Source: Pavona decussata (lineage: Eukaryota). From it: a DNA stretch of 64,000 nucleotides. Under the pieces are notes generated by a model. That model had not been told where the DNA came from and ran no database searches. It saw only the letters and a list, made by a program, of their open reading frames with translations. Position 1 is the stretch's first letter. Each line of letters starts with the position of its first letter. Both the position numbers and the translations under genes were made by a program. The DNA lies in contig CDRNST010000129.1 in the NCBI GenBank assembly GCA_977016875.1, positions 496,001 to 560,000 of the forward strand. Reading direction: 5' to 3'. This document shows, one piece after another, positions 9,646 to 62,269 of the stretch.

Positions 9646-10959
9646 TTACACAGTGAATAATAATTCAGGGAATTGCCTACGAAGCGCATTTGTTCCTTTC
9701 CCACCCTCACAATCTGTAAATGTAAATGTTACACCTGAACATGTAACAGAGCGCACACCTTTGTCTCCGCACGTCCTCGCATTCCCTGTAGGGTCGGTTA
9801 TTTTAGCTTGTAAGTGGTACACAGCGTTTTTCTTAATAACAATTGGTGCGTCAAAGATGACGGTAAAACCATAGTAGCTAAACAATTCAAGCGTATATAG
9901 CGATGAAGAAAATTGTCCGCTTTTGGAAACCAATTTCCTCGCGCTTTCCTTTACCTCCAGGTCTACATCAATTGTGGTGTTTTCAATACCAAAAATGCCA
10001 ATTCCATGCAAGAAAATATCTTTGTTTACAGAAAAATTAATGCAGTTAACATAAGTCGTCAATAAACTATCGAATTGGACTACCGAATTGAATCTATGAC
10101 ATCGTTGAACTGACAACAGAGAGCCACAACGTTTGATTTCTGAAAATCCCACAGGAGATGTTAACACTGAACTTAAGTATTTGACAATTTCGACGATTTC
10201 TTCTGTCATTAAAATTCCACTGTTCAACACAACACTGGCGAAGTCTTCTAGTTTCATTGTTGGAAAACGTATTCCTTTCACTATTTGCTCTCCAAGAATT
10301 CTTCTTTTAGCTTTTCCGTCCGCTTCTACTAAGCCTTGCCGCCGACATTCCTTTGTGGCCCACAATTCCACAGCTTTAAACAGTTCTATTTCCGCAATCA
10401 GCAGGGTATCTCTTGCAACCATAGCCTCAAGTAAGGACCTGTCGATTGTCACAAATCCATCCGATTTCACAGCCGCATTGGTTTGTTCATCGATCAGTTT
10501 CCAGCACTGATCTACCAGGTTTTTCTCTTCGTATTTCTGCGCAGATGGTAAAACACTGAAAACATTTGATGGATCTAAATTTTCTTGTAAATATTCCGTG
10601 CATTTATCAACGAGTGAAGGCACCATGTATTTCTTCGCCAAATACAACACCGCCATCACATTATTTCCGCTCAAATTCACTTCATCGCTGTACATGTAAC
10701 GAAATAACTCCAACAGACTCTGGTACTCACAGTCAGGCAGTTCAATAGAGTCTCTAGTCTCCGCTAGCTCACCGTAAAACATGGCTTCAAACACAGGACT
10801 GCCAATCGACAGCACAAACTTGTGAGCTGGAATCACTTGCTTACTTTCACTTTCTCCATCGCTCTTACGAACCACAAACTTCACATCGCTGAAGAGATCG
10901 TTGTTGAGCATAAACTTGGTTCTTTCTCTGATGGTTGGTTTCGTTGTCTGCCAGTTCAT
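9646..10959 (-). CDS. BTBD6-like: BTB/POZ-BACK-PHR protein, copy 1 (437 aa, intact)
   Basis: SDVKFVV, IPAHKFVLSIGSPVFEAMFYG, BACK region (EIELFKAVELWA, IRFPTM), PHR (RCHRF...QFPELLF). Confidence 0.93.
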   Translation of the reverse strand: MNWQTTKPTIRERTKFMLNNDLFSDVKFVVRKSDGESESKQVIPAHKFVLSIGSPVFEAMFYGELAETRDSIELPDCEYQSLLELFRYMYSDEVNLSGNNVMAVLYLAKKYMVPSLVDKCTEYLQENLDPSNVFSVLPSAQKYEEKNLVDQCWKLIDEQTNAAVKSDGFVTIDRSLLEAMVARDTLLIAEIELFKAVELWATKECRRQGLVEADGKAKRRILGEQIVKGIRFPTMKLEDFASVVLNSGILMTEEIVEIVKYLSSVLTSPVGFSEIKRCGSLLSVQRCHRFNSVVQFDSLLTTYVNCINFSVNKDIFLHGIGIFGIENTTIDVDLEVKESARKLVSKSGQFSSSLYTLELFSYYGFTVIFDAPIVIKKNAVYHLQAKITDPTGNARTCGDKGVRSVTCSGVTFTFTDCEGGKGTNALRRQFPELLFTV

Positions 10960-11878
10960 TTTGGTCTACGATTTGGCTTCAGAACCCGAAAGCGGCGCAC
11001 TCTAATCGGAAATTTTAAGCAATGCTTTAGGAAACCTGACACGGAATATTAAAGCTTGCAACTTATCGCTTATGCAAACAGCGGCGACACAAAATAACTT
11101 CCGTATAGAATTACCATAGAACTTACTTAGCGTGACCGTGATTAAAATAGATTCAGTCATGCAGTCAGGTGTGACTGAAAGCAGAAAGTGTACACTACTC
11201 CACCGTGCGAAGGTCTCCTATTTTCCTCCGGGATAAAAAACGAACGAAAAAAGAAAGCAAGCGTGAAAATCGCCTTCTGTGAGGAAACCAGACTCGTGAG
11301 GGGTTTCAACATTTAACTCGATCAGCCTTTAAAACAGTTTTTATAGATATCTTATTCTACCTCTACTTATAGTGACGTCCCTTCAGTTTTAAAAATATCA
11401 TTGTGAATTTCATGAGAACTATTGTTAAATCAATTTTCATACAGTTCCCATATAGCCATTCTGTTTGATTTCCTTTTCTTTATTTTTCAACCATGCCGGT
11501 TTCAACAGCAAACTGTTTCCTATCTGAAACTAAATAATTTTTCTGTACATGAGCCTCTTTTCTGTCACTTAATCTTCTAAAATTCAGAATTATTCAGTGA
11601 AATAATTATGATTTTCCAGTGTTTCTGAAACTTACTGTAAGACTTGGTACCGTAAAATTCCCAATGGGAGCCCCTCCGAGAAAATCCCACCCAAACATAA
11701 GCCCTAAATTTCAAAATATGATTCAAATACAACAAGCTCTATGATAGTGCCCCTTTAAGCTAATACTTGACTGTTTCACGTTGTTTTAAGCTCTTTTGAT
11801 GATCAAGCCAAAACAATTTTGTAAAAAACATTTTCATCAACAATATAAGCCCAGCTTTCCCCACATTTTAAGGTTTAG

Positions 11879-13237: not shown

Positions 13238-13803
13238 GTTTACAGAGTATAACTAAAATTAAATCACTTTATTTAAGTTAATTTCATATACGTAATTTAA
13301 GCACAAGGCACTACAGTAATATCGGATAATATCCAGATCAAATTGGAATTAAACTTAACCCTGACATTTGGTGATTAGATTTATAACCAATTTTTTTTTT
13401 TGATAATCACTGAGTGTAGTACAGCAAATCAAAAGCAAATGCAAAATTATCTTTGATACTAATTTGAAAACTCCTCCTAAGGCCTAACCCTAAAAACTAA
13501 CTCTGGCTTCAGTTGACTTTTAGAAACTAACTGAGCGTTGAAGAACAAAACAAAAGCAATGTAAAATTACTTTTAATACTGATTTGACAACTCCTGTTAT
13601 GCCTATAATGGTAGATGTAATTACATGTAAGTCCATCTAAAATATTTAATCTATTCGTCCTATTTATACTATATCATTTCGCTCTCTCTCACTGTTTTCA
13701 GATTTTGTTCATATCTTTTTGTATTCATCTTGTAGGTGAATCTGGACTTTCGTTTCTGGAAGCGTGTCAAAAAGCCTCCCCGCCAAGGCTTTCCTTTGTT
13801 GGA

Positions 13804-15138
13804 TTACACAGTGAATAATAATTCAGGGAATTGCTTACGAAGCACATGCTCTCCGTTCCCACCTTCACAATCTGTGAATGTAAATGTGACACCTGAACAT
13901 GTAACAGAGCGCGCACCTATGTCTCCGCAAACCCTCTTTTTATCATCAGGGCCGGTTATTTTAGCTTGTAAGTGCTGTACATTGTCTTTCTTAATAACAA
14001 TTGGTGCGTCAAACATGACGGTAAAACCGTAATAACTAAACAATTCAAGAATGCATAGGTCTGAGGAAAACTGTCCGCTTTTGGAAACCAATTTCCTCGC
14101 GCCTTCGTTTACCTGCACATCTACGTCAAGTGTGTGTTTTTTAGTGCCAAAAATGCACAGTCCATGCAGCAAAATATCTTTGTTTGCAGAGAAATTGATG
14201 CAGTAGTTATATGTCGAGATAGCCGGTCCAAGCGGCACCCGCCAAAGAATTCCAACCCCCATGATCGAGTTGAATCTACAACATCTTTGGACCAACAGAA
14301 GACCACAGCGTTTGGTGTTTGAAAATCCTATAGGACAAGTCAACACTGAACTGAAAAATTTGAAAATTTGATTGATTTCGTCTGTCATTAAAATTCCGCT
14401 GTCCAACACCACACCAGCGAAATCTTCTTGTGTCATGGTGGGAAAACGCATTCCTTTCACTATTTGTTCTCCAAGAATTCTTCTTTTATTTTTTCCATCC
14501 GCTTCCATTAAGCCTTGCCTCTGACATTCCTTTGTGGCCCACAACTCCACAGCTTTAAATAGTTCTATTTCCGCAATCGATAGAGTGTGTCTTGCAACTA
14601 TTGCCTCAAGTAAGGACCTCTTGATTGTCGCAAATTCATCCGATTTCACAGCCGCATTTGTCTGTTTATCGATCAGTTTCCAGCATCGATCCATCAGGTT
14701 TTTCTCTTCGTATTTCTGCGCAGATGACAGAATGCTAAAAACGTTCGACGGATCTAAATTTTCTTGCAAATATTCTGTGCATTTGTCAGCGAGTGAAGCC
14801 ACCATGTACTTCTTAGCCAAGTACAACACTTCCACTGCATTACTTCCCCTCAAATTCACTTCATCGCTGTACATGTAACGGAACAACTCCAACAAACTCT
14901 CGTACTCAAAGTCAGGCAGTTCAATAGAGTCTCTAGTCTCCGCTAGCTCACCGTAAAACATGGCTTCAAACACAGGACTGCCAATCGACAACACAAACTT
15001 GTGAGCTGGAATCACTAGCTTGCTTTCACTTTCACCATCGATCTGACGAACCACAAACTTCACATCGCTGAAGAGATCGTTGTTGAGCATAAACTTGGTT
15101 CTTTCTCTGATGGTTGGTTTTGTTGTCTGCCAGTTCAT
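13804..15138 (-). CDS. BTBD6-like: BTB/POZ-BACK-PHR protein, copy 2 (444 aa, intact)
   Basis: Same domain motifs as copy 1; full ORF. Confidence 0.93.
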   Translation of the reverse strand: MNWQTTKPTIRERTKFMLNNDLFSDVKFVVRQIDGESESKLVIPAHKFVLSIGSPVFEAMFYGELAETRDSIELPDFEYESLLELFRYMYSDEVNLRGSNAVEVLYLAKKYMVASLADKCTEYLQENLDPSNVFSILSSAQKYEEKNLMDRCWKLIDKQTNAAVKSDEFATIKRSLLEAIVARHTLSIAEIELFKAVELWATKECQRQGLMEADGKNKRRILGEQIVKGMRFPTMTQEDFAGVVLDSGILMTDEINQIFKFFSSVLTCPIGFSNTKRCGLLLVQRCCRFNSIMGVGILWRVPLGPAISTYNYCINFSANKDILLHGLCIFGTKKHTLDVDVQVNEGARKLVSKSGQFSSDLCILELFSYYGFTVMFDAPIVIKKDNVQHLQAKITGPDDKKRVCGDIGARSVTCSGVTFTFTDCEGGNGEHVLRKQFPELLFTV

Positions 15139-15708: not shown

Positions 15709-15716
15709 GTTGTTGC

Positions 15717-15750
<34 letters not shown>

Positions 15751-15752
15751 GC
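15709..15752. repeat. (TTG)n microsatellite
   Basis: Direct reading; source of the spurious poly-Leu ORF. Confidence 0.9.
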
Positions 15753-20257: not shown

Positions 20258-21157
20258 TTAAGTCGTGCACTCTATCCTCCGGTGTGAGCTATGTGTAGAT
20301 TCATGAGAGGATGACAGAGAACCAAAACGTTTGGTTTCTGAAAACCTTAAGGGAGAAGTCAACACTGAGCTGAAGTGTTTGATCATTTGGATGATTTCTT
20401 CCTGTATTAAAATTCCACTGTCCAGCACTACACTCGCAAAATCTTCTTGTGTCATGGTTGGAAAACGCATTCCTTTCACTATTTGCTCTCCAAGAATTCT
20501 TCTTTTATCTCTTCCATCCGCTTCTACTAAGCCTTGCCTCTGACATTCCTTTGTGGCCCACGATTCCACAGCTTTAAACAGTTCTATTTCCGCAATCAGC
20601 AGAGTATCCCTTGCAACTATCGCCTCAAGTAAGGACCTCTCAATGGTCGCAAATCCATCCGATTTCACTGCCGCATTTGTTTGTTCATCGATGAGTTTCC
20701 AGCATCGATCCGCCAGGTTTTTCTCTTCGTATTTCTGCGCAGATGGCAAAATGCTGAAAACATTCGACGGATCTAAGTGATCTTGCAAATACTTCGTGCA
20801 TTTCTCAGCGAGTGAAGGCACTATGTATTTCTTAGCCAAGTACAACACTCCCATCACATTACTTCCGCTCAAATTCGCTTCATCGCTGTACATGTAACGA
20901 AACAACTCCAACAGACTCTCGTACTCACAGTCAGGCAGTTCAATAGAGTCTCTAGTCTCCGCTAGCTCACCGTAAAACATGGCTTCAAACACAGGACTGC
21001 TAATCGACAGCACAAACTTGTGAGCTGGAATCACTCGCTTACTTTCACTTTCACCATCGCTCTGACGAACCACAAACTTCACATCGCTGAAGAGATCGTT
21101 GTTGAGCATAAACTTGGTTCTCTCTCTGATTGTGAGTTTTGTCGTCTGCCAGTTCAT
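20258..21157 (-). CDS. BTBD6-like: BTB-BACK protein, copy 3, PHR domain deleted (299 aa)
   Basis: Intact BTB/BACK; after KRFGSLS it jumps to the 3' flank shared with copies 5 and 10. Confidence 0.8.
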   Translation of the reverse strand: MNWQTTKLTIRERTKFMLNNDLFSDVKFVVRQSDGESESKRVIPAHKFVLSISSPVFEAMFYGELAETRDSIELPDCEYESLLELFRYMYSDEANLSGSNVMGVLYLAKKYIVPSLAEKCTKYLQDHLDPSNVFSILPSAQKYEEKNLADRCWKLIDEQTNAAVKSDGFATIERSLLEAIVARDTLLIAEIELFKAVESWATKECQRQGLVEADGRDKRRILGEQIVKGMRFPTMTQEDFASVVLDSGILIQEEIIQMIKHFSSVLTSPLRFSETKRFGSLSSSHESTHSSHRRIECTT

Positions 21158-26670: not shown

Positions 26671-28008
26671 TTACACAGTGAATAATAATTCAGGGAATTG
26701 CTTACGAAGCACATCTTCTCCGTTCCCACCTTCACAATCTGTAAATGTAAATGTTACATCTGAACATGTAACAGAGCGCGCACCTATGTCTCCGCAAACC
26801 CTCTTTTTATCATCAGGGCCGGTTATTTTAGCTTGTAAGTGATGCACAGTGTTTTTCTTAATAACAATAGGTGCGTCAAACATGACGGTAAAACCATAAT
26901 AATTAAACAATTCAAGAATGCAAAGGTCTGAGGAAAACTGTCCGCTTTTGGAAACCAATTTCTCAGCGCCTTCGTTTACCTCCACATCTACATCAAGTGC
27001 GTTTTTTTTAGTACCAAAAATGCACAGTCCATGTAGCAAAATATCTTTGTTTGCAGAGAAATTGATGCAGTGGTTATGAGTGGAGGAAGCCGGAAGGGGC
27101 ACCCACCAACGAATTCCAACCCCCATGATCGAGTTGAATCTAAAACATCTTTGGACCGACAGAGAACCACAACGTCTGGTTTCTAAAAATCCCATAGGAC
27201 AAGTCAACACTGAACTGAAAAATTTGAAAATTTGATTGATTTCGTCTGTCATTAAAATTCCACTGTCTAACACCACACTGGCGAAATCTTCTTGTGACAT
27301 GGTTGGAAAATGTATTCCTTTCACTATTTGCTCTCCAAGAATTCTTCTCTTAACTTTTCCATCCGCTTCCACTAAGCCTTGCCTCTGACATTCCTTTGTA
27401 GCCCACAATTCCACAGCTTTAAACAGTTCTATTTCCGCAATCGATAGAGTGTGTCTTGCAACTATCGTCTCAAGTAAGGACCTCTCGATTGTCGCAAATC
27501 CATCCGATTTCACTGCCGCATTGGTTTGTTCATCGATCAGTTTCCAGCATCGATCCATCAGGTTTTTCTCCCCATATTTCTGGGCAGATTGCAAAATGCT
27601 GAACACATTCGATGGATCTAGGTGATCTTGCAAATACTTCGTGCATTTCTTAGCGAGTGAGGGCACCATGTATTTCTCGGCCAAGCAAAACACTCCCATG
27701 GCATTACTTCCGCTCAAATTCGCTTCATCGCTGTACATGTAGCGAAACAACTCCAACAGATTCTCGTACTCACAGTCAGACAGTTCAATAGAGTCTCTAG
27801 TCTCTGCTAGCTCACCGTAAAACATGGCTTCAAAAACAGGACTGCCAATCGACAGTACAAACTTGTGAGCGGGAATCACTTGCTTACTTTCACTATCACT
27901 TTCACCATCGCTCAGACGAACCACAAACTTCACATCGCTGAAGAGATTGTTGTTGAGCAGAAACTTGGTTCTTTCTCTGATGGTGGGTTTTGTTGTCTGC
28001 CAGTTCAT
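26671..28008 (-). CDS. BTBD6-like: BTB/POZ-BACK-PHR protein, copy 4 (445 aa, intact)
   Basis: Full ORF; its PHR is closest to copy 2. Confidence 0.93.
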   Translation of the reverse strand: MNWQTTKPTIRERTKFLLNNNLFSDVKFVVRLSDGESDSESKQVIPAHKFVLSIGSPVFEAMFYGELAETRDSIELSDCEYENLLELFRYMYSDEANLSGSNAMGVFCLAEKYMVPSLAKKCTKYLQDHLDPSNVFSILQSAQKYGEKNLMDRCWKLIDEQTNAAVKSDGFATIERSLLETIVARHTLSIAEIELFKAVELWATKECQRQGLVEADGKVKRRILGEQIVKGIHFPTMSQEDFASVVLDSGILMTDEINQIFKFFSSVLTCPMGFLETRRCGSLSVQRCFRFNSIMGVGIRWWVPLPASSTHNHCINFSANKDILLHGLCIFGTKKNALDVDVEVNEGAEKLVSKSGQFSSDLCILELFNYYGFTVMFDAPIVIKKNTVHHLQAKITGPDDKKRVCGDIGARSVTCSDVTFTFTDCEGGNGEDVLRKQFPELLFTV

Positions 28009-28507: not shown

Positions 28508-31500
28508 TTTAGTGTTTGTGATATACTGTAGTAGTTCTGATAAGAACGAGCTGTAACGCTGGCACGTGATTGTGATCATATTTCCGTGCATAATCTCTGA
28601 GGTTAGCTATGTAAAAGTACTTCGCGAGTTGTAAACGAAGAGGTCATCTTCAAGACCGTGCATGTTATTAAAATAAAATACGAAAATACAAAGTTGGCGA
28701 CGAGGATGCCCGATACCGTCCCTACGTCCGGCAGTGCAACGCCAGCCATTTCAGCAAGTCCTTCTAGTCCGATGGCTTCTTTACCGACTTCCCGAGTTGC
28801 CGTCATTTTCTTTAGCAGATTAAGTCGTCTACTCTCGGACAGCGTTGATCCAAGTGGGTTCAGTCATTGGAGTATTTTATTCTTGCTTGTGGTATAAGGG
28901 ATCCCAAGCAGAAGCGGGCCGTTCTTCTACACCTTGCGGGCCAAGAGTTACAGGATGTACATTCGCCACGTTACAAGACACAGGAGAAGACTACGATACA
29001 GCGGTTCAACGCTTAACGGCTTACTTCGAGCCCAAAAAGAACGTGCCCTTCGAGAGGCACATTTTTCGGTCCGTTCCTCAAATGCCCGACGAGCCCCACG
29101 ATGCTTTTTCAACACGGTTACGGCAGTTGGTGAAGAGTTGCGACTACTGGGAGAGGGCTAGTGAAATGATCAGGGATCAGCTAGTTGACAAGTGTCAGTT
29201 ATTCCCGGGACCTTCGACAACGGTTTCTTCGAGAGACGGACCTCACTTTGCAGAAGGCTCTGTCCATCGCGCGCGCTACAGAAGCTTCAAATCGAAATGC
29301 CGCGTAAATGGAGACATCAGCTTCAGCGCCGGTCAGTTCGCTGCGATTTCGTTCAGACCGTCCGAAACATTCTAACCCGCCCCGCACCGTCCAAATGGAA
29401 ACGCCCCTAGGTGAAGCTGGTCTGTCAGTTTTGCTGCGGTAAAGAAGGTCACAAAGCGAAACACCGCGTGAAGCAAATTCGCCTCGTTGAAACCGGAGAG
29501 TACTTGCAAGATAACTCTCTCGATCAAGAGTATCTCTTCGCATTGGAAACCTCTGTTTCGAAGTGCATTGTCTCGATCCGCGTCATTGACACGGAAGTAC
29601 CCGTAGTCATTGATCTGGTGCCAGTGTAAACGTTCTTGACGGTACGGCTTTCCAGCGTTTCCACGGTATTTCACTGTAGAAAACAGATGTCCGTGTGTAT
29701 CCCTATGAATCGCCGAAACCTGTATCTGTAGGGGACATATTCGATACGCGCGTGTACTCTAGCTCTACTGGTTTATCAACTGAAGCTCGATTTGTGGTTG
29801 TTGAAAATGACAACGCTGGTTCGCTCTTAGGAATTCGAAAGGACACAGATTTCGCCTTGGGTCTACTGAGAGTCGGGCCAGCCCGGTGGAGGTACGGTCG
29901 CTCATGCAAAGTTCCCCCGGGACAGAGGGTGCCTCGCGTGGTCTCGCGTAGATCATCTGGTCACGCAATACGCCAGTATTTTCGAGGCAGTCTGAAGAAC
30001 TGCCAGCTAAAAGTTCACACCGATCCGAAAGTTACTCCTGTGGCGCAGCCTCTCCGACGGACGCCCTTCCACTCCGTAAGGCTGTCGACCAGAAACTACA
30101 GCAGTTTGCCGATCTCGATATCATTGAAGATGCTGACTGTCCTACCCCGTGGGTATCCCCCTTAGGGTTCAAACCAAAGCCCAGTGGGGACATCCGTGTC
30201 TGCGTTGACATGAGACGAGTTAATGAAGCAATGGTGCGTGAAAGGCATCCTATACCCACCTTGGAGGAGACCTTACAGGCCATGAATGGTGCAAAGGTGT
30301 TTTCAAAACTTGATTTGCGATGGGTTTACTATCAAATTGAGCTTCATCCAAACTCGCGCAACTCTCATGATTACCACGTTCTCCACTCACACGGGCCTCA
30401 AGCGCTACATTTGAACGCCTTATTTTCGGTCTACCCTCCGCTTGTGAACAGTACCAGTACGTAATTCAAGAAACCCTACAGGGTATTGCTGGCGCCCGGA
30501 ATATTTCCGACGACACCCGCATCTTCGAAAAGGATCAGGATTCACATGACCGCTACCTAAAAGAGACTTTTAAGAGACTTAAGGAATGTGGGCCCACTCT
30601 GAATAAAGAAAAGTACCTTTTCAGCGTTTCTGAGCTGGTTTTCTTCGGTTTCAAAGTCTCTGCGGCTGGTCTTTCTCCGTATGATAAGAAGGTAGAAACC
30701 ATACAGAATGCTTGCACCACTCAGAATTCTGGCGAGGTAGAAGCTTCCTGGGTCTTATTAACTATTGCTCCAGATTTATTCCAGATTTCTCCACCAGGTC
30801 AGAACTGCTCCGGCGGTTGACCAGAAAAGGAGTCCCGTGGTCGTGCACCTCTCAGCACCAAGAAGCTTTTGAGAAGCTGAAGTCCACACTGGCGAATGAT
30901 TGTGTTATGGCACACTATGATGAGACCAGAGCTACTCAGTTACGAGTGGATGCAATTCTAGTAGGTGTTGGAGCAATACTAATGCAGCATAATGGCACTA
31001 CCCCTTCGCCCAGTCGCTTTTGCTAGGCGTACACTTACAGACGTGGAAAGACGGAACTCGCAAACTGAACGCGAGGCCTTAGCGGTGGTTTGGGGTTGTG
31101 AACAGTTTCACATTTACTTATACGGCAAGGAATTCAGCCTCTTCACTGATCATAAGCCTGTAGAGATCATTTACAGCCCTAAGTCAAAGCCGCCTCCCCG
31201 CACTGAGTGATGGGCGCTAAGGCTACAGCCCTACAAGTTTAAAGTGATTCACATGCCAGGCAAGACAAATCCAGCCGATTTTCTTTCGTGTCTCCCTCTT
31301 CAAGGCCAGCCCAACCGTGGACGGCAGATAGCGGAGGAGTACATAAACTACGCTGCCTCCAATTCGATCCTCAAAGCCATGTCCCATACAGAGATTGTTA
31401 ATGCAACGCGAGACGATCCGGTACTGCAGAGTCTGCTGAGCTTTCTCCTTGGTGGCAAATGGCCGGCTATTCCCGACCTTCTTCCTTTCTACCCGGTTCG

Positions 31501-40300: not shown

Positions 40301-43300
40301 CTTTCTCAAATTGAATCCTCCATCTTTCATTCTAGATCTTGCCTTCGAATAGAGTTCGAAGGCCTCGGAATCATTGTCCTTTCCCCCGTTGAAATCATCC
40401 ACATAGAGAGAGAGTTCAGGAATTCGTTTGCGAACTGAGGATCGTCTGATTCATAGCTTGTGACGTGGTGTCTTATCGTGCCATTTAGGAGAAAGGGTGA
40501 ACTCGTGACGCCAAACACAACTCGGTTAAAACGCTTGAGAACAATTTTGGGGACTTGACTTGTAGGGTCATCTACCCACAGGAAACGTAAGACATCTCGG
40601 TCGGGCTCTGCAACCCCTACCATTAAGAAGGCTTTCTCTATGTCGGCTGAAAAGGCAATGCGATGATATCTGAAACGCATGAGGACGTCAGATATGTCAG
40701 AGAGTAAAGATGGGCCTGCATATAGACATTCGTTGAGGGACGGGCCAGTAGACGTCGTCTGTTTATCTTCGCGTATAACTGGATGGTGTGGCAAGTAATG
40801 GAGGCGACCAACCTTGATTTCAGAGTTAGAATCAACTTCAGAAATTATTCCTTTGGACGACTGTTCTTCTATTATTCTGTTGTATTCGGCGAGCAATTCA
40901 GGGTTTCTTCTCAGACGCTTCAAGACAGAATTTAGGCGTGAGACTGCAACTTCATAGTTGTCTGGTAGCAAAGGGTGATGTTCCTTCCACGGTAAAGATA
41001 CTTCATAGCGGCCATCGCGATTGTGAATCGTATCCAAGAACTTGTCATGAACAGATGCTTCGTTTGCTAACACGCCAATGCTCTCTAACTCCCAGAATGT
41101 CTTCATTTCCTCCACTAGCGGGTCTCCGTGTTTTTCCTCTGAAACAGCCTCGGAAGGGTGCGACGTGTCAAGTCTCAGAGTGTGGCAGGTTGTTAGATTC
41201 ACTTCAGATTCAGAACTCAGTTCTTGGGGTAAGGGACCGGATAGTACCCATCCTAGAGTCGTTTTCATGGCGACAGGACCAAATTCCCCCCGTTTCAGAT
41301 CTCCGGTAAAGAAACACCAATAGATGTCATTTCCAATCAAGATATTCACTTCTGAGCCGCAATCCACGACTGGGCAATCCGCGAGTTCTAAATCAACCAA
41401 ATGTCTGTAAGACTGTTGGGCAAGTTGCACTGATTGATCCTTTAGAGGGCTGCAAATTAGGGGAACTACATTCGCAGTCATCTGAACTGTCGAGCTGTCT
41501 ACACCAAGTCCATTGACACAGAATTCAACGACATCGCATTCTTTCAGTTGCTCCTTCTTGTCCGAAAGTCTTGATAAGAAGCTTCTCGGATTTTACAGCG
41601 GATAGATTAAGCTTGTTCCTAGCACGTTCGGTCATATAGCTTCGCTGACTTCCACTATCAAACAAGATTCGCATAGTGCGACCAGTGTGTAGCTGATTAA
41701 CGCTAGACACCTTGCCAATAGCAGTTTGCAGAAGGACAGATGTATTCGAGTTTACGTACACGGTTGTTAAAGACTTCCTTTCCTGGACTCCCTCTTGACG
41801 CGCAGTTGTACATTTGGCTTTATTGCAAATCGACACGTGATGTTTTCCTGAGCAATCATGACACGTGCTGCTAGAAGGGCAATTCAGGCCACATGACTGC
41901 GGCGCAAGCACAAGAAACAACGCCCCTGTTGTTTTAATAGATTTCTTCTAGCTCCAATATCAGTGATTGTGGTACAACGTGCGCTGGGGTGCTTCTGTCT
42001 GCAGTACGTACAACTCACAGACCTCTCTTCTGATTGTGTTACTAAGGTAGATGCGGTAGAGGGGCCTGACCTACCCTTAATAAATCTCCCGACATTCAAC
42101 TTCACTGGGATCACAGCTGGTTCAGACAAGTTATTTCCAATCAGTTCACAGCGCTCCCTTGCTTCAATTTCGCTGTCAAAATCCCTTAAGAGTACATCTA
42201 AGTCCCACTGTTCTTTATCTATGGACCTTGAAATTGTTAAGGGCAGATTTGCTGGTAGTTTCTCCATCAGAAGGGGTATAAACAACTTCCCATAAGATTC
42301 ACTTTCCACCCCTATAGCTTGAAGAGCGCGAATGTGGGCCTCAACTTGATCGTAAAGCTCCCTTAGACGTTTCAAGTTACTGTCAAATGCTACTGCTGCT
42401 ATCTTAACGAGACACTCCATATGTGCATCGATAATAACTTGTGGTTGCCCGAAACGCTTCATTAGAATGTTTTTCGCCGCTTCATAATTATCGGCTATTA
42501 AAGGAAGACCACGAATGGCTGCGGCGGCCGTACCGTACCCACTAAGGTTTTAAGATAGTTGAACTTATGAACATCTGACAGCGCTTGGTTCTCGTCCACA
42601 GCACTTACGAATGAATCCCAAAAGGGAGAGAAAAGGATGGGATCCCCATGGAACTTTTTCAGAGAAATCTTAGGTAGTTTTGCCTTTACCCCTAGGCCAT
42701 AACTAAACGAATTAGAAGTAACAGAATGAGAGTTGGACTTATCTGAATTGTTCTCCACTTCTGCAAGGAGCACCTCGTCTATCTTCACCATCATTTCATG
42801 AATAGACTCTCTGAAATTTCCTGTTTCTTCTATTTCTGCTTCGATTTGATCCTCTTTAAGTAGACTGAGGATTTCGTCATCTAGACTTCCAAGAATCTTG
42901 AGTTTCTCTTCAAGAGCAATCCGATATGTTTTCAACTGATTAACCACGGTGGGCTCGAAACGGTCGAGTAGAGATTGAATCCTTTCCAGAGTTTTTGTGA
43001 CATATCCCTTATGTCCTCCTCGAATTTTCTTGTTCTTTTTCAGATCTTCGTCCCCCATTTTGTAGATGAAATCCTCTTCAGACGGCGACTTGTCGCTTCT
43101 CGATGAAAGTATCTGAAATAATCCTTAGACGGCGAGTTGTCGCTTCTCGATAAAAAATTCTCAGAAATTCTTCTTTAGACGGCGACCATTCGCTTCCTGG
43201 GTCTCGGCACCATGTTAAGAAAAAGTTCTCCTTGAATGGTAGGCTCAAACTCCAAATTTAATCCCAATAAATAAACGGGAAAATGGAAAACAACAAAGCG

Positions 43301-45040: not shown

Positions 45041-46381
45041 TTAGACGCTGAACAGCAGTTCAGGAAACTGTCCCCGCGTAATGCTTGTTCCATTTAAACA
45101 GTATTTACTGTTCGTAAAAGTAATTGTTACGCCTGGATATTTCACTGATTTAAAGCCATTTCCACCGCTACAAGAATCGGAGCCAGTGATCGAAGCTTCT
45201 ATGGAGTATGTTGTGAATCTTTTAAGGTTAACAACCGTGTCAAAAAACACCTCAAAACCTTGATATTGACGTAGCTTGCTCTGCAAAACACCGGACGAAA
45301 ACCATCCAGCTTTGGACGCCAAAACGGATTTATTCTCGGCGTTTTTTACCTCCAAAATAACCCAGTAACTGTTGTTTTCCCTGCCAAAGAAGCTGACACC
45401 ATGTAGCGTAACATCTCTGTCCGCAGACAGGTTGATGCAGTCTTTTAAAGAATCATTTTTCCAGCTGTTGCAGACGGACACCGAACCAAATCTACAACAT
45501 CGTTGAATGTCACCGAGAAAGCCCGACCTTTTGATGTCTGGGAATCCTACAGGACAAGTTAACACTGAATTGATGTGTTGGACGACACGGACAATTTCTT
45601 CGGTGGTTAAAATCTTGCTGTCTAAGGCGGCCGTAGCAAAGTCCACTTGCTCCATCGTCGGAAAGCGTATGGCTTTGACAATTCTTTCGCCAAGAATTCC
45701 TCTTTTCATTGTACCATCTGCTGTTAAACCTTGCCTCTCACACTCCCCTTTTGCCCATAAATCTACAGCACAAAATAAGTCAACCTCTTTTATGTTCAAA
45801 GTGTCCCTCGCAACAATTGCTTCAAGTAAGGACCTCTCAATTGTCGTAAATCCGTTCCCAGGCTTCGCAACCTCTTTCGTCTGTTGATCTATTACTCGCC
45901 AACAGCATTCCACCAAATATTTCTCTTCATATTTCTGTGCAGATGGCAGAATGCTGAAGACATTTGACGGATCTAAATTCTCTTGCAGATATTTGGTGCA
46001 TTTCTCAGCCAGAGAAGGCACCATGTATTTCTTCGCCAAATACAATACTCCCATCGCATTGCTTCCGCTCAAATTCACTTCATCGCTGTAGATGTAACGA
46101 AACAGCTCTAAAAGACTCTCGTACTCACAGTCAGGCCGTCCAATAGAGTTTCTAGTATCCGCTAGCTCACCGTAAAACATGGCTTCAAACACAGGACTGC
46201 CAATCGACAGCACAAACTTGTGAGCTGGAATCACTTGCTTACTTTCACTTTCACCATCGCTCTGACGAACCACAAACTTCACATCGCTAAAGAGATCGTT
46301 GTTGAGCATGAACATGGTTCTTTCTCTGACGGTGGTTCTTGTTTTTTGCCAGTTTATTACAGAAGCAGACATGGCATACAT
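45041..46381 (-). CDS. BTBD6-like: BTB/POZ-BACK-PHR protein, copy 6 (446 aa, divergent subtype)
   Basis: Full ORF; different 5' flank; PHR keeps canonical W and NGTSITRGQFP. Confidence 0.9.
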   Translation of the reverse strand: MYAMSASVINWQKTRTTVRERTMFMLNNDLFSDVKFVVRQSDGESESKQVIPAHKFVLSIGSPVFEAMFYGELADTRNSIGRPDCEYESLLELFRYIYSDEVNLSGSNAMGVLYLAKKYMVPSLAEKCTKYLQENLDPSNVFSILPSAQKYEEKYLVECCWRVIDQQTKEVAKPGNGFTTIERSLLEAIVARDTLNIKEVDLFCAVDLWAKGECERQGLTADGTMKRGILGERIVKAIRFPTMEQVDFATAALDSKILTTEEIVRVVQHINSVLTCPVGFPDIKRSGFLGDIQRCCRFGSVSVCNSWKNDSLKDCINLSADRDVTLHGVSFFGRENNSYWVILEVKNAENKSVLASKAGWFSSGVLQSKLRQYQGFEVFFDTVVNLKRFTTYSIEASITGSDSCSGGNGFKSVKYPGVTITFTNSKYCLNGTSITRGQFPELLFSV

Positions 46382-49279: not shown

Positions 49280-50577
49280 TTACACAGTGAATAAAAATTC
49301 AGGGAATTGCTTACGAAGCACATGTTCTCCGTTCCCACCCTCACAATCTGTGAATGTAAATGTTACACCTCCATTTGTAAAGAGCGCACACCTATGTCTC
49401 CGCAAACCCTCTTTTTCCCAGTAGGCTCGGTTATTTTAGCTTGTAAGTGGTGCACAGCGTTTTTCTTAATAACAATTGGTGCGTCAAACATGACGGTAAA
49501 ACCATAATAATTAAACAATTCAAGCATGCATAGCTTCGACGAGAACTGTCCAATTTTCCAAACCAACTTCCTCGCGCCTTCGTTAACCTCCACGTCTACC
49601 ACCATTGTGCTGTTTTCAATACCAAAAATGCACAGTCCATGCAACAAAATATCTTTGTTTACAGAGAAATTAATGCAGTGATAATGAGTTCTGAAAAAGG
49701 TCTCCCAATGAACTACCGACGGAGTTGAATCTACAGCATCGTTGAGCTGACAAAGAAGTACAACGTTTGGTTTCTGAAAGTGGGGAAGTCAACACGGAGC
49801 TGAAGTATTTGACAATTTGGACAATTTCTTCTGTCATTAAAATTCCGCTGTCCAACACCACACTCGCGAAATCTTCTTGTGTCATGGTTGGAAAACGTAT
49901 TCCTTTCACTATTTGCTCCCCAAGAATTCTTCTTTTAGCTTTTCCATCCGATTTTACTAAGCCTTGCCTCTGACATTCCTTTGTGGCCCACAATTCCATA
50001 GCTTTAAACAGTTCTATTTCCGCAATTAGCAGGGTATCCCTTCAAGCAAGGAGCTGTCGATTGTCGCAAATCCATCCGATTTCACAGCCGCATTTGTTTG
50101 TTCATCGATCATTTTCCAGCATCGATTCACCAGGATTTTCTCTTCGTATTTCAACGCAGATGGCAGAATGCTGAAAACATTCGACGGATCTAAGTGATCT
50201 TGCAAATACTTGATGCAATTTTCAGCGAGTGAAGGCACCATGTATTTCTTCGCCAAGTATAACACTCCCATCACATTGCTTCCGTTCAAATTCACTTCAT
50301 CGCTGTACAGGTAACGAAACAGCTCCAACAGACTCTCGTACTCACAGTCAGGCAAGTTCAATAGAGTCTCTAGTCTCCGCTAGCTCACCGTAAAACATGG
50401 CTTCAAACCGGCAGGACTGCCAATCGACAGCACAAACTTGTGAGCTGGAATCACTTGCTTACTTTCACTTTCACCAACGCTCTTACGAACCACAAATTTC
50501 ACATCGCTGAAGAGATCGTTGTTGAGCATAAACTTGGTTCTCTCTCTGATTGTGAGTTTTGTTGTCTGCCAGTTCAT
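49280..50577 (-). pseudogene. BTB-BACK-PHR pseudogene, copy 7 (multiple frameshifts)
   Basis: Indels near 50410, 50355, 50040, 49717 and 49370 relative to intact copies; four ORF pieces. Confidence 0.9.
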
Positions 50578-54757: not shown

Positions 54758-56060
54758 TTACTGGGAGAATAGTAATTCAGGGAATTGTCTGCGCTCGAAG
54801 TCGCTTCCGTTCCGCTCAAAACAATCTGTGAATATAAAAGTTACACCGGCACTTATAACAGAGCACACACCTATGTCTCCACACATCATCTTTTTCCCAG
54901 TAGGGCTGATTGTTTTAGCTTGTAAGTGGTGCACAGTGTTTTTCTTAATTACAATTGGTGCGTCAAACATGACGGTAAAACCATAATAATAACAAAACAA
55001 TTTAAGCGTGCATAGCTTTGAGGAGAACTGTCCACTTTTAGAAACCAAGTTACTCGCACCTTCGTTAACCTCCACGTCTACCAACATTGTGCTGTTCTCA
55101 ATACCAAAAATGCACACTCCATGTAGTAAAATATCTTTGTTTACAGAGAAATTGATGCAGTGGGCATGAGTCGTCAAACCAGAATCCCATTGAACAACCG
55201 AATTGAATCTACAACATCGTTGAACTGACAAAGAACCACAACGTTTGGTTTCTGAAAATCCCACAGGAGAAGTTAACACTGAGTTGAAGTATTTCATAAT
55301 TTGGATGATTTCCTCTGTCATTAAAATTCCACTGTCCAACACAACACTAGCGAAATCGTCTTGCTTCATTGTTGGAAAATGTATTCCTTTCACTATTTGC
55401 TCTCCAAGAATTCTTCTTTTATCTTTTCCATCCGCTTTTTCTAAGCCTTGCCTCTGACATTCCTTTGTGGCCCACAATTCCACAGCTTTGAACAGTTCTA
55501 TTTCCGCAATTGATAGAGTGTGCCTTACAACTATCGCTTCAAGTAAGGACCTCTCGATTGTTGCAAATCCATCCGATTTCACAGCCGCATTTGTGTGTTT
55601 ATCAATCACTTTCCAGCATCGATCCACCAGGTTTTTGTCTTCGTATTTCTGCGCAGATGGCAAAATGCTGAAAACATTTGACGGATCTAAATTTTCTTGT
55701 AAATATTCCGAACATTTCTCAGCGAGTGAAGGCAGCATGTATTTCTTAGCCAAGCATCACATTATTTCCGCTCAAATTCACTTCATCGCTGTACATGTGA
55801 CGAAACAGTTCTAAAAGACTCTCGTACTCACAGTCAGGCAGTTCAATAGAGTCTCTATTCTCCGCTAGCTCACCGTAAAACATGGCTTCAAACACAGGAC
55901 TGCCAATCGAAAGCACAAACTTGTGAGCTGGAATCACTTGTTTACTTTCACTTTCACTATCGCTCTTACGAACCACAAACTTCACGTCGCTGAAGAGTTC
56001 GTTGTTGAGCATAAACTTGGTTCTTTCTCTGATGGTGGGTTTTGTTGTCTGCCAGTTCAT
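54758..56060 (-). pseudogene. BTB-BACK-PHR copy 8, single frameshift (11-nt deletion at ~55754)
   Basis: ccaag|catcacatt versus ccaagtacaacactcccatcacatt in paralogs. Confidence 0.88.
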
Positions 56061-56394
56061 TTTCAACCCAAAAGAAATGCTTTAGGAATCAGTAAGAACA
56101 GCGGCGACACAAAACAATTTCCCTAGAAAATTACCATACAACTTACTTAGCGTGACCGTGATTCAAATGAGGCGAGTAAAAATAGATTCAGTCATGCAAT
56201 CAGGTGTGTCTGGGTCGTCACGGCGGTTTTGGCTAAAATTTAATATCCAGAGAATCAAATACTTTGATCTTCTTGTAAAATTGCAGTTGTGTTTGTACTG
56301 AAAACTATTTCATATACGGCTTCCAATAATTCGCAAGATTTGCAAATGGAACTCAAGGGTATGATAATGTGATCTGTGCCCCCCTCCCCCCACC

Positions 56395-57085: not shown

Positions 57086-58295
57086 TTGTGACGGGGCAAC
57101 ATTGAAGCCAACGAATAGGGTCAGTATTACCAAGAGTACAAATGCTACCATGTTGACGCATTTTTCGCTCATCATCCACGTAAACACGATCGCAATCGTT
57201 CGTAACAACGGTTTACAGGGTGAAGCTTTTGAAACTCCGACAAACGGAGACTTCTGCAAAAGCTGAAGATATTTTCAAGCAAAAAATCTACGAAGACGCG
57301 GATGTGGACGACTGAAAATATGAATTTGATGCGGTCAAAATGCGAGGAGATACTTTGCTAAGGCATCGGGACTTAGGCTTTGGCCGATTGTGCTTAATTG
57401 TAAGATGTTTTTGTTAGCATTTTTGGCCTTGACCATGCACAGACCGCAATATATAGATTTTGAAATGTGTTGGAGCAACTGGCCAATAGAAACGTTCCTG
57501 TTAAGATATTCAACTGTAGTGTGAATGTTAAAGCAAAGGATTGTACACGGTCGCGGCCCTTCCAACATAAATTGCAGCACCATTAATCGTCATGGCAAGA
57601 TTTCATAACTAGTTCCTCGCATGCTAATTTTCTTTCTGATCTGTCGCTACTTATTGACAGGCTTACTAGAATGGATACTCCAAAATGAGCTTGGACACCT
57701 TATGGTGTTTACACAATGTATTCGGAAATCGTGATAGACCTCACGTGGAAGAGAAGAGAAGCCCATTTCAGTTAGGCACAGAACTGAGAGAATCAGAGTT
57801 TCATTTAGGCAGGGATCATCCGTTTTGGGAGTTTAGCACTGATCTACACTATTTAGGCCTAAGCACTGATTTAAAAACGGTTACCTGTCAATTTGTTGTG
57901 ATGGTAACTCTCAGAAATAAGTTAAAAATTACCAATTTCGTCAGCTAACCCTCTTTGGTCTAGTGGATATGGATATAAAGTAAATGACCCGGGTTCGAGG
58001 CGTACACTACTTTGAGGTTTTAAACTTCTTTTATCGTTTGAAGCACACAATAGAAGGCCGCCACCTCTGGTAGCTACCAGATTTTCTCAATACGACGGTT
58101 TTTCAAGAAATCTGGGGTGTTGCCGGATTTACTAGGCTAATATTACAGTGAAAAGTTCATCAGTAATAAAGATGCGAATAAAAAAAAATTATTCGCCAAA
58201 ATTATACTCTCTTTGTAAGAGTTTGCTAAAACAAATTGCTAGCACAATCGAAAAAGGCCTCTAACGTTCTTAGGCGCGGGCACTGTATGTCGTGT

Positions 58296-59461
58296 TTAGA
58301 CGCTGAACAGCAGTTCAGGAAACTGTCCCCGCGTAATGCTTCTTCCATTTACACAGTACTTACTGTTCGTAAAAGTAATTGTTACGCCTGGACATTTCAC
58401 TGATTTAAAGCCATTTCCCCCGCTGCAAGAATCGGAGCCTGTGATCGAAGCTTCTATCGAGTACGTTGTGTATTTTTTAAGATTAACAACCGTGTCAAAA
58501 AACACCTCAAAACCGCGATATTGACGTAGCTTGCTCTGGAAAACACCGGACGAAAACCATCCAGCTTTGGACGCCAAAACGGATTTATTCTCGGCGTTTT
58601 TTACCTCCAAAATAACCCAGTAACTGTTGTTTTCCTTGCCAAAGAAGCTGACTCCACTGACGTAGCGTAACATCTCTGTCCGCAGACAGGTTGATGCAGT
58701 CTTTTGAAGAATCATATTTCCAGCTGTTGCAGACGGACACCGAACCAAATCTACAACATCGTTGAATGTCACCGAGAAAACCCGACCTTTTGATGTCTGG
58801 GAATCCTACAGGACAAGTTAACACTGAATTGATGTGTTGGATGACGCGGAAAATTTCTTCGTTGGTTAAAATCTTGCTGTCTAAGGCGGCCGTAACAAAG
58901 TCCACCTGCTCCATCGTCGGAAAGCGTATGGCTTTGACAATTCGTTCTCCAAGAATTCTTCTTTTCGTTGTTCCATCTCCTGGTAAACCTTGCCTCTCAG
59001 ACTCCCTTTTTGCCCATGAATCTATGGCGCAAAATAAGTCAACCTCTTTTATGTTCAAAGTGTCCCTTGCAACTATTGCCTCAAGTAAGGACCTCTCAAT
59101 TGTCGCAAATCCGTTGCCCGGCTTCACAACCTCTTTCGTCTGTTGATCTATTACTCGCCAACAGCGTTTCACCAAATATTTCTCTTCATATTTCTGTGCA
59201 GATGGCAGAATGCTGAAGACATTTGACGGATCTAAATTCTCTTGCAGATATTCGGTGCATTTCTCAGCCAGAGAAGGCACCATGTATTTCTTCGCCAAAT
59301 ACAATACTCCCATCGCATTGATTCCGCTCAAATTTACTTCATCGCTGTACATGTAACGAAACAGTTCTAAAAGACTCTCGTACTCACAGTCTGGCATTTC
59401 AATAGAGTCTCTAGTCTCCGCTAGCTCACCATAAAACATGGCTTCAAACACAGGACTGCCA
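58296..59461 (-). pseudogene. BTB-BACK-PHR copy 9 (sister of copy 6), 5'-truncated and frameshifted
   Basis: Begins abruptly at GSPVFEAMFYG, fused to spacer sequence like 33795; +4 nt at ~58655. Confidence 0.88.
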
Positions 59462-60949
59462 AGTTAACTAAACCGTATAAAATTTTTCCTTTCTCTAAAC
59501 GGCCGGCAAAACTAGCAAACAAAACGATAAAAACCTGCACTAGCCAAATGTTCGATCCTATGACAGTTTGATGGCTATAATCAAAGAATATTCAGCCTGG
59601 TCGGAAAAACAATATTCTTATAAAAGAAAAGAGTATATTTAAAAAAGAAGTTCCCAAGTTTTCAAAACTTGAGTCGCTTAAATGTCACAAAATGCTCTAT
59701 TTGAACCTATGCACGCTTAAAATAAAAAATCGTTCCTCGAAGTTCACAGTATTCCACCGACACTTGTCATTATCTATGCATCATATTGAGCCAAGTAAAA
59801 CTTATTTTGTAAAATGAAAGATCAGGGAAAGGGTCACGAAGGATCCATATAATTCTACAATTTTGTAACCTCGGATGTAGCTGTTCAAAGCATATTTCAG
59901 TTTTTCTGGGTACCCGGTTTCGCTTCCCGTGAAAAGAGATCTGGGAGTCGACTGACGGGCAAGAGTGTAAAGAGCCAATATGTAGTCTGCTCTCACCTTG
60001 CACCGGCAATGTTTCGATCATATCAAACGAAAAACCCGGAACACATCAATTCTTACAATCACCTTTATTTGCAAAATAATGCGTTCGTATATACATAGCA
60101 CGCGAACAAAAACAGTAACAAACCAAATCACCAGATTTTTTTGGTTTTGTTTTGATAACATGGACTTACACCGACACAAATGTAATTTTTCAATTATTTG
60201 GCGACCTAATATTGATTTACTGAGTTAATAGACCATCTGATATTCAGGATGTCTATGAGTGTTTTAAAAAAGAAAGACAGAGAATTCACTGTTATAACCC
60301 TGCCCACTGATGCGAAAACAAAAACAAAGTACATGGAATTTTTTTCAGTTGGAAAAACACTCTACAACAACAAGCCCCATCTGCATTACCATATATTAAC
60401 TTGTTACAGTATTGCAGAAGCGTCAAAAGAGACCTATAGCTCTGCTAAGTAATGGAAACTCAAAATACAAAGTACCAGGAGCCGATAACTCATGGGCTCC
60501 TGAAAGTACTTACTACAGAAAAGAAGGTGGACAACAGAATTAAACTTCATCAGACTATATTATTTGGTAACAAATTGTTTTTTAAACCAAAACAGGATGA
60601 AATGAACTTAACCAGCTGCTGACATGCTCATTGGAGATCATTGATGTGATTTGTAAATGTTTGAAGTTTGGAAATTTAGTACTTATTTCATCATAAAAGT
60701 CACTTCTAACGGATGAATAATAGAACAAACAACAGATTTCATCTCACTGAACTTGCAATGAGAGCTTAGTCGTTTACACCTCGATATTTTCTCGTATCTA
60801 ACTGTCGCTAGCTCTAAATTATCACTAAATTCAAAACTAGTTGCTTATCCTATGAAATATATTGTTTATACAATATTATGTGCTAGTTCTAGTACTTTTC
60901 AATTCACAGGAAAGTTTCAAATCGTGCACTCCTCTGAGCTATGTGTGGA

Positions 60950-62269
60950 TTACAGAGAGAATAGTAATTCAGGGAATTGTCTGCGACGCACGTTCGTCCC
61001 GTCCCCTCCATCACAATCTGTAAATGTAAACGTAACACCTGCACATGTAACAGAGCGCACACCTATGTCTCCGCACACAACATTCACCGCGGGGCTTTTT
61101 ATTTTAGCCTGCAAGTGGTACACCGTGTCTTTCTTAATAATAATTGGTGCGTCAAACAAGACTTTAAAACCATGATAACTAAACAATTCAAGTTCATAAA
61201 GCTCCGAGGAAAACTTTCTGCTTTTTGACACAACTTTGTTTCCGCCAGAGCATTTTGTTATTTCCAGGCTTGCCGTCATTGCATTATTTAGACTACCAAA
61301 GATGTACACTCCATGTAACAAAATATCTCTGCTCACAGAGAAATTGATGCAGTCCGGATAAGGCTCGGGGAAACCACCGCCAAAACACCGTGGAACTACC
61401 GAGTTGAATCTACAACATCTTTGAAACAAAGAACCACAACGCTTGGTTTCTGAAAACCCCACGGGAGAACTCAACACTGAGTTGAAGTATTTGACAATTT
61501 GGACGATTTCTTCTGTCATTAAAATTCCACTGTCCAACACCACACTCGCGAAATCTTCTTGTGTCATGGTTGGAAAACGCATTCCTTTCACTATTTGCTC
61601 TCCAAGAATTCTTCTTTTATCCTTTCCATCCGCTTCCACTAAGCCTTGCCTCTGGCATTCCTTTGTGGCCCACAATTCCACAGCTTTAAACAATTATATT
61701 TCCGCAATCAGCAGGGTGTCCCTTGCAACTATCTCCTCAAGTAAGGACCTCTCGATTGTCGCAAATTCGTCCGATTTCACAGCTGCATTGGTTTGTTCAT
61801 CGATCAGTGTCCAGCATCGATCCACCAGGTTTTTCTCTTCGTATTTCTGCGCAGATGAAAGAATGCTGAAAACATTCGACGGATCTAAGAGATCTTGCAA
61901 ATACTTTGTGCAAATTTCAGCGAGTGAAGGCACCATGTATTTCTCCGCCAAGTACAACACTTCCATCACATTACTTCCGCCCAAATTCACTTCATCGCTG
62001 TACATGTAACGAAACAACTCCAACAGACTGTCGTACTCACAGTCAGGCAGTTCAATAGAGTCGTTAGTCTCTGCTAGCTCACCGTAAAACATGTCTTCAA
62101 ACACAGGACTGCCAATCGACAGCACAAACTTGTGAGCTGGAATCACTTGGTTACTTTCACTTTCACCATCGCTCTTACGAACCACAAACTTCACATCGCT
62201 GAAGAGATAGTTGTTGAGCATAAACTTGGTTCTTTCTCTGATTGTGGGTTTTGTTGTCTGCCAGTTCAT
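60950..62269 (-). pseudogene. BTB-BACK-PHR copy 10, one in-frame stop (GAA>TAA at 61694-61696)
   Basis: 1320 nt collinear with copy 5; AEI*LFKAV versus AEIELFKAV. Confidence 0.88.

Follow-up and report, generated by a model that had tools for sequence, protein, structure and literature searches.

What would a coral do with a row of genes that are nearly alike in one half of the encoded protein and diverge in the other? The question is raised by a tandem array of BTB-BACK-PHR genes in a 64,000-nucleotide stretch of Pavona decussata DNA (contig CDRNST010000129.1, here C129, positions 496001–560000; below, the window), which we analysed together with genome-wide searches in the 602-Mb stony-coral assembly. 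The BTB-BACK half of these genes is under purifying selection and has a history different from that of the PHR half, where we find positive selection; the genes multiply in place, by tandem and by multi-gene segmental duplication, and die often. We consider it rather probable that the array belongs to a coral-lineage expansion of intronless, two-module genes of the BTBD1/2/3/6 type, the PHR variants of which form a repertoire of substrate receptors.

A preliminary description of this DNA had placed ten co-oriented tandem copies at 9646–62269 and had taken the array as a candidate receptor repertoire. Tblastn with copy 1 as the query finds ten copies between these positions, all on the minus strand. 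The number thus stands, but half of the copies are pseudogenes and the array runs past the window.

9646–10959, minus strand: copy 1, intact BTB-BACK-PHR gene, 437 amino acids in a single open reading frame (ORF; evidence, ORF and Pfam)
13804–15138, minus strand: copy 2, intact, 444 amino acids (ORF, tblastn)
20258–21157, minus strand: copy 3, truncated, BTB-BACK only, with unrelated sequence in place of the PHR (tblastn covers residues 1–279 only)
26671–28008, minus strand: copy 4, intact, 445 amino acids, sister of copy 2 (ORF, Pfam, tree)
35303–36622, minus strand: copy 5, intact, 439 amino acids (ORF, Pfam)
45041–46381, minus strand: copy 6, intact, 446 amino acids, conservative subtype with the hairpin W and the GQ motif (ORF, Pfam)
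49283–50577, minus strand: copy 7, pseudogene broken by multiple frameshifts and stops (tblastn match split into four pieces that differ in frame)
54764–56060, minus strand: copy 8, pseudogene with a small deletion and frameshift near codon 103, the remainder open (tblastn)
58299–59463, minus strand: copy 9, pseudogene of the copy 6 subtype, without the first 51 codons and with a frameshift in the PHR (tblastn)
60953–62269, minus strand: copy 10, pseudogene with one TAA at codon 192 (tblastn, reading frame)

Each intact copy (in the window, only copies 1, 2, 4, 5 and 6, five of the ten) is one ORF of about 440 codons, the coding part of which has no intron. Downstream of copy 3 no PHR-like sequence was found in any frame, and copy 7, read through, has 11 stops. 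The copies are 76–88% identical at the protein level. The array extends about 30 kb past the window and comprises at least 16 copies, nine of them intact; 7 of about 16 are broken.

As expected for BTBD1/2/3/6-type proteins, Pfam BTB, BACK and PHR domains score above the gathering thresholds in copies 1, 4, 5 and 6, the four tested (copy 1 E-values: BTB 1.3e-27, PHR 1.1e-21, BACK 2.7e-08), and this layout is common to all 45 genes of our family alignment. The BTB of copy 1 matches that of human BTBD6 (2vkp) with E 2.6e-29. AlphaFold2 (AF2) predicts confident beta-sandwiches for the PHR of copy 1 (per-residue confidence, pLDDT, of about 76–96 per ten-residue block) and for that of copy 2 (pLDDT 89 overall), and Foldseek gives the BTBD2 PHR 3no8 as the best match (E 2.5e-13, template-modelling score 0.81 by target), followed by the MYCBP2 PHR structures 3gbw and 3hwj. 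The phi-x-E motif of BTB domains is a contact with Cullin-3 (Cul3). At this position 36 of 39 genes have L-A-E, which aligns with M-S-E of KLHL3; conservation is complete at L65 and reaches at least 90% at A66 and E67. Cullin genes of this coral consist of short exons, about 35–75 residues each.

The window's main clade departs from the conserved PHR signature, a hairpin W-x-Y and a C-terminal NGT...GQ(I/F)P, of which BTBD2 has W-G-Y and GQIPE, and MYCBP2 has W and GQIPQ. In the main clade there is no fixed hairpin W, and the C-terminal motif reads R/K-Q-F-P-E, that is, the glycine of GQ is now R or K. A W-x-Y-like hairpin and the GQ motif are mostly retained in copy 6 and in the clusters elsewhere in the genome. 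The loss is a derived state within the family and gives no ground for excluding the main clade from the BTBD1/2/3/6 type.

Selection on the PHR domain

The preliminary description had set very similar BTB domains against a segment, between the anchors RCxRF and CIN(F/L)S, that differs in almost every copy. Column entropy in the 45-gene alignment bears this out, being lowest in the BTB (0.3–0.8 bits), intermediate in the BACK (0.6–1.2) and highest in the PHR (1.2–2.4), with PHR peaks at residues 291–310, 331–360 and 411–430 and the maximum of 2.4 bits at 291–310. All nine segments listed there were read again and found correct, including that of copy 7, where the hairpin is legible once the frame is changed. 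The segment had been called a loop; its position was right, and the predicted structure is the outer half of the first PHR beta-hairpin. In the AF2 model of copy 1 the strands are 290–297 and 302–311 and the tip is 298–301, while in copies 2 and 4 an insertion makes the tip a 12-residue loop (copy 2 PHR model: strands 7–12 and 25–36, with pLDDT 61 in block 11–20).

10045–10083, minus strand: hypervariable first beta-hairpin of copy 1, codons 293–305 (posterior for omega>1, AF2 secondary structure)
14203–14265, minus strand: lengthened hairpin of copy 2, 21 residues (AF2 model, 12-residue tip loop of lower confidence)

Inside the strands entropy is autocorrelated at lag 2 (r = +0.34), while at lag 1 the correlation vanishes (r = -0.03). 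Along a strand, variable and conserved side chains thus take turns, as a retained hydrophobic core would predict, so the PHR fold is kept. It is only in the main clade of this array that the hairpin is hypervariable; clusters elsewhere in the genome vary at PHR positions 339–347 and 413–428 instead. We rejected donors of micro-conversion for the hairpin, as copies 2 and 4 alone in the whole genome have the long insert.

To compare selection in the two halves we used Goldman-Yang codon site models (M0, M1a, M2a, M7, M8 and M8a) in our own Python implementation, the M0 likelihood of which (-2246.049) agrees with that of IQ-TREE (-2246.0485) to 0.001. In the PHR of the window's main clade (nine sequences), M2a is strongly preferred to M1a: twice the log-likelihood difference (2dlnL) is 41.7 (p 9e-10), with 17% of sites at an omega (dN/dS) of 3.6. 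The M7–M8 and M8a–M8 comparisons concur. In contrast, in BTB-BACK of the same clade M2a collapses onto M1a (2dlnL 0.0). The PHR signal persists with intact genes only (2dlnL 20.6). It is also seen in seven close sequences that include three copy-1-type genes from a second coral assembly (ENA ERZ25073751; PHR 45.3, BTB-BACK 0.0, selected sites 296–300, 389, 394 and 423–426), and in six intact close genes from the two assemblies (PHR 49.0). An independent cluster of nine genes, on contig C84, gives 2dlnL 79.7 for the PHR (p 5e-18, M0 omega 1.11, 22% of sites at omega 5.6) and a non-significant 2.4 for BTB-BACK; here the signal falls outside the hairpin, in different patches of the surface. The site models that had been proposed for BTB versus PHR are thus significant in the PHR and not in BTB-BACK, with the exception of the cluster on contig C56, where both halves give a modest signal. 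Across data sets the positively selected PHR class has an omega of about 3.6–9, and in clades without a BTB-BACK signal BTB-BACK omega is 0.27 to 0.41. In this array the selected sites are mainly at the hairpin tip (posterior for omega>1 above 0.95 at copy 1 codons 296–301 and 304), with further ones at positions 389–394 and 423–426. The PHR of the conservative copy 6, compared with its relatives, has an omega of 0.2–0.45 and is under purifying selection.

Counts made without a tree, in the six intact close genes, led to the same picture. The proportions of nonsynonymous and synonymous differences, pN and pS, are 0.40 and 0.18 in the hairpin (pN/pS 2.26), and pN/pS falls to 0.67 in the PHR outside the hairpin, 0.24 in BACK plus linker and 0.21 in the BTB. 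The uniform dN/dS near 1 by which neutral decay was to be recognised is therefore not seen: the ratio rises from 0.21–0.27 in BTB-BACK through 0.67 in the rest of the PHR to 2.3 in the hairpin. Since pS is 0.11–0.19 throughout the gene, that of the hairpin is ordinary, and the excess of pN thus reflects selection for amino-acid change; local hypermutation of the hairpin was rejected on the same ground. Between copy 1 and its nearest paralogue, identity is about 90% in the non-coding flanks, 96–97% in the BTB and 83% in the hairpin window, so the hairpin changes faster than the neighbouring non-coding DNA.

Module exchange and growth of the array

The two halves of the gene do not share one history. 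In the BTB, dS is flat (about 0.22 for all pairs), whereas PHR values span 0.08 to 0.76. The trees of the BTB-BACK and PHR halves disagree, and in each of the two clades examined the approximately unbiased (AU) test rejects, for either half, the tree of the other (p 0.001, 5e-39, 9e-5 and 8e-53). In both clades a scan for a single breakpoint favours residues 240–270, the BACK–PHR linker, although part of the likelihood gain is a rate difference between the halves. The discordant histories indicate that front halves are exchanged or homogenised among paralogues, with different PHR types enduring, and that the sameness of the BTB is partly due to concerted evolution or module exchange. The distinct PHR types are older than the front halves that now carry them. 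Of the proposed constant adaptor with a variable binder, the contrast in selection therefore holds, but the uniformity of the BTB cannot be put down to constraint alone, as it comes partly from recombination or gene conversion. Because BTB-BACK omega is still 0.2–0.3, recombination refines the constant-adaptor picture and does not overturn it.

Genome-wide, 98 near-full-length matches were scored among 469 first-look candidates, and most of the 98 are stop-free open reading frames. PHR matches above the Pfam cut-off number 146, most of them within open frames of 440–500 codons; we therefore count at least 146 PHR loci. Tandem clusters lie on contigs C56, C84, C45, C36 and C129, and in a tree of 45 intact genes every genomic cluster is its own clade, which argues for amplification in place. 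The nearest named relatives of the proteins are from Pocillopora, Stylophora, Oculina and Porites; public annotation labels such proteins 'BTBD6-like'. The second coral assembly has a similar array (contig ctg101768) of at least six copies within 21 kb, of which two are broken; none of the hairpins in its copy-1-type genes resembles one from the window, whereas its copy-6-type gene is nearly unchanged.

We noted two further loci, C35:2271953-2273404 and C110:898695-900146, in which BTB-BACK is 75–76% identical to that of copy 1 and the PHR only 42%. Both halves lie within one 498-codon frame, and the two loci look like mutual duplicates or haplotigs. They may be a further case of module exchange.

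Part of the growth of the array is by multi-gene segmental duplication, with duplicates 95–99% identical. Positions 58008–64000, with copies 9 and 10, are repeated 8.4 kb downstream at 97.9% identity; the copy 6 unit is repeated at 95% and the copy 7 pseudogene at 96%. Copy 10 has an intact duplicate beyond the window, to which an aligned 4.3 kb is 99.2% identical and from which its coding sequence, with the stop masked, differs by about 10 substitutions. The 5′ truncation of copy 9 is also present in its duplicate (x11); the same truncated pseudogene within a duplicated block means that dead copies duplicate together with live ones.

Copy 6 and its duplicate x13 have flanks that are 96–100% identical, yet their coding synonymous divergence is 0.11–0.20. 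Although under purifying selection, the gene has diverged several times as far as its surroundings. One possibility is patchy gene conversion from pseudogene copies of the same subtype.

Outside the gene family, the window holds a 133-N run (an assembly gap or masked stretch) at 5768–5900 and two retroelements within the array:

28845–31921, plus strand: decayed retroelement remnant between copies 4 and 5 (Integrase_H2C2 1.3e-10, short broken ORFs)
37586–43058, minus strand: BEL/Pao-type long terminal repeat (LTR) retrotransposon between copies 5 and 6 (Peptidase_A17 1.2e-46, Integrase_H2C2, rve, DUF1759)

The former lies in a GC-richer stretch (0.47–0.49). The latter is broken into four ORFs, with gag-like (DUF1759), Pao peptidase and integrase domains.

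Upstream sequence and RNA-library matches

An alignment of 13 upstream regions revealed a block that is common to the main-clade copies:

10960–11190, minus strand: block of about 230 nt upstream of copy 1, probable 5′ untranslated region (UTR) and promoter

Within it (window 11100–11190 and homologues) we noted that a TGACTG...ATGACTGA motif stands in tandem, similar to sites for activator protein 1 (AP-1) or Maf recognition elements (MARE) and in copy 4 precisely TGACTCA. Since the copies owe the motif to common descent, its recurrence among them does not count as independent evidence of function. Gamma-activated sequence (GAS) sites, TTCNNNGAA, occur 33 times in the window against 31.8 expected, and the 500 nt upstream of each copy hold none; a recurrent match sits within the coding FPELLF motif.

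Two metatranscriptome runs contain short contigs, 95–97% identical, over the coding region of copy 1 and its proximal flanks, and in these two runs no contig covers the intergenic stretch 11400–11799. One run of unknown type covers coding and intergenic sequence alike. In other samples, contigs join the conserved anchors across differing intervening letters, which shows that additional hairpin variants exist elsewhere. We tested if a GTAAGT in the upstream block marks an intron in the 5′ UTR, and rejected this, since RNA-library contigs run through it and no joint is reported. A loose end at 11143 matches sequence upstream of copies 8 and 10, and thus reflects a difference between paralogues and not a splice.

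Proposed substrate receptors and their possible targets

The family members are probably Cul3 substrate adaptors, by analogy with their vertebrate relatives. In vertebrate Btbd6, BTB-BACK binds Cul3 and the PHR does not (bioRxiv 10.1101/575910). By this analogy, and given the kept L-A-E, the coral BTB-BACK would dimerise and dock on Cul3; each PHR variant would bind a different protein and present it for ubiquitination, and the array would be a repertoire of substrate receptors. More speculatively, the targets might be fast-evolving or foreign proteins of viruses, intracellular microbes or symbionts, or of transposons.

Several points weigh against a repertoire of receptors under diversifying selection. 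That the PHR receives substrates is an analogy, and the mapped substrate of Btbd6 uses the BTB. Half of the copies in the window are dead. Evidence of expression consists of short contigs in two RNA libraries, which carry neither strand nor level; they are suggestive of transcription and no proof of it. In the C56 cluster the signal is weaker and not domain-specific (2dlnL 8.6 for the PHR and 10.0 for BTB-BACK), which in BTB-BACK may be a recombination artefact; indeed, recombination can inflate site-model tests in general. Our models fixed relative branch lengths from M0 and then scaled them, and site posteriors are naive empirical Bayes. When the hairpin is removed, the signal of the window clade is weak (2dlnL 1.5–9.5), and loops hold no significant excess of selected sites compared with strands (Fisher p 0.15).

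Could the pattern arise without selection for new binding? It is possible that the family is selfish or drifting, with a PHR that is relaxed and decaying and a BTB kept constant only through gene conversion. Such neutral birth-and-death would fit the pseudogenes that make up half of the window copies, the transposons inside the array, the 40–48% or so of PHR sites in the omega = 1 class, and the recombination or conversion of front halves, which is real. We nevertheless regard it as improbable: M1a is rejected for a class with omega 3.6–9 in four data sets, intact-only ones included; hairpin pN is more than twice pS and above the divergence of the non-coding flanks; the low BTB-BACK omega (0.21–0.27) means selection and not conversion alone; and the core of the sandwich is conserved with strand periodicity in a family where most of the 98 scored matches are stop-free. 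Least probable of all, in our view, is an artefact of a misaligned, indel-rich loop, of recombination within the PHR or of assembly collapse of near-identical repeats. The hairpin does have in-frame indels, its removal takes most of the signal from the window clade, and recombination is demonstrably frequent. However, in the close set, where four of six hairpins are of equal length between conserved codons, 2dlnL is still 49, and the tree-free pN/pS concurs. The equally recombinant BTB-BACK halves, as negative controls, give 0–2.4, the C84 signal lies outside the hairpin, and copies that are 76–88% identical as proteins are too diverged for assembly collapse. A role of the variable PHR in tuning localisation, oligomer assembly or regulation, with substrates such as BTB proteins coming in through BTB heterodimerisation, seems to us hardly more probable than an artefact. 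It would agree with Plzf, which binds the BTB of Btbd6, and with the PHR of Btbd6, which promotes nuclear import and does not bind Cul3 (10.1101/575910). Against it, localisation alone hardly accounts for recurrent positive selection and length change at an exposed hairpin tip; recognition would fall to the BTB, yet no part is more conserved; and C-terminal parts of BTBD1/2 bind TOP1 (PMC3002306).

If the repertoire is real, what drives it? Nematode and plant adaptor families show the same pattern, which is not known to have been linked firmly to pathogens, and the driver here might be internal: conflict with selfish elements, germline or gamete recognition, or a co-evolving, expanded family of endogenous partners. 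The data point to no particular target, there are LTR retroelements in the array, and immune-type promoter motifs are lacking (GAS sites are at chance and absent from the 500 nt upstream of the copies). However, a BTBD6 expansion in a vent snail was grouped with immune families (PMC7895826), and knock-down of BTBD2 raises permissiveness to HIV-1 (PMC3002306). We think an internal driver unlikely, though less so than neutral turnover. Somewhat better placed, but still doubtful, is the proposal that more than 100 Cul3 adaptors use PHR hairpins and loops to recognise and ubiquitinate viral, intracellular-bacterial, Symbiodiniaceae or transposon proteins. By the same tentative proposal, the array would be a germline-encoded repertoire of restriction factors built on the PHR fold and shuffled onto a common BTB-BACK at the linker, in parallel to TRIM5 and its SPRY domain and of independent origin.

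How does the substrate-receptor repertoire that we favour compare with known systems? Vertebrates have four BTBD1/2/3/6-type genes (10.1101/575910). The coral genes share with them the order of the three domains, the BTB match, the PHR fold and L-A-E at phi-x-E, and differ in number (at least 146 PHR loci), in being single uninterrupted ORFs, in the main clade's loss of the hairpin W-x-Y and the GQ glycine, and in positive selection on the PHR. In Btbd6 the one mapped substrate, Plzf, is recruited by BTB heterodimerisation, the PHR promoting nuclear import (10.1101/575910). PHR-containing C-terminal regions of BTBD1/2 pull down TOP1; knock-down of BTBD2 increases HIV-1 permissiveness modestly, two- to three-fold, and BTBD1/2 only co-localise with TRIM5 variants (PMC3002306).

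The likeness to constant-adaptor, variable-binder families of nematodes and plants, which the preliminary description had drawn, extends to tandem expansion, turnover and PHR-confined selection, C56 excepted. The MATH-BTB (BATH) and F-box families of nematodes and grasses also show lineage-specific tandem expansion with birth-and-death turnover, the docking domain being conserved and positive selection limited to the domain presumed to bind substrates (PMC4091423, citing Thomas 2006, Genome Res 16:1017; PMC6883508). Unlike in those families, the variable module of the coral genes is a PHR beta-sandwich, not MATH or FBA/LRR, and the host is a cnidarian. Further marks of the coral family are its large scale, the absence of introns, module exchange at the linker, and clusters that diversify different patches of one fold. 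A second likeness is to TRIM5, TRIM22 and the fish finTRIMs, which are also tandem clusters with a ligase-linked beta-sandwich and selected, length-variable short loops (PMC2151084 for TRIM5/22). The fold is, however, another one, the coral proteins would be Cul3 adaptors rather than carry a RING of their own, and the coral family is not known to have a viral target. The vent snail Gigantopelta aegis, likewise a symbiotic marine invertebrate, has an independent lineage-specific expansion of BTBD6, listed by the authors among immune-related families; it was reported as a gene-count heat map only, and may or may not be an array of the same kind (PMC7895826).

In the literature searched, which mostly leaves out subscription journals, we found no paper on the coral family or its selection pattern. 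The large intronless cnidarian expansion of BTB-BACK-PHR genes with a selected PHR is a new form of known, adaptively evolving adaptor families. For coral genomics, it matters that these genes are all annotated 'BTBD6-like', that they collapse in short-read assemblies and that half of an array can be pseudogenes. The PHR sandwich, otherwise conserved and poorly understood, is here seen to act as a scaffold for variable loops. What is known of innate immunity in cnidarians concerns mainly expanded sensors of the NLR, TLR and lectin types. If the favoured reading is true, a ubiquitin-linked intracellular repertoire under diversifying selection would be a new arm of cnidarian immunity. It would also provide a concrete set of genes for work on coral disease, bleaching and symbiont specificity.

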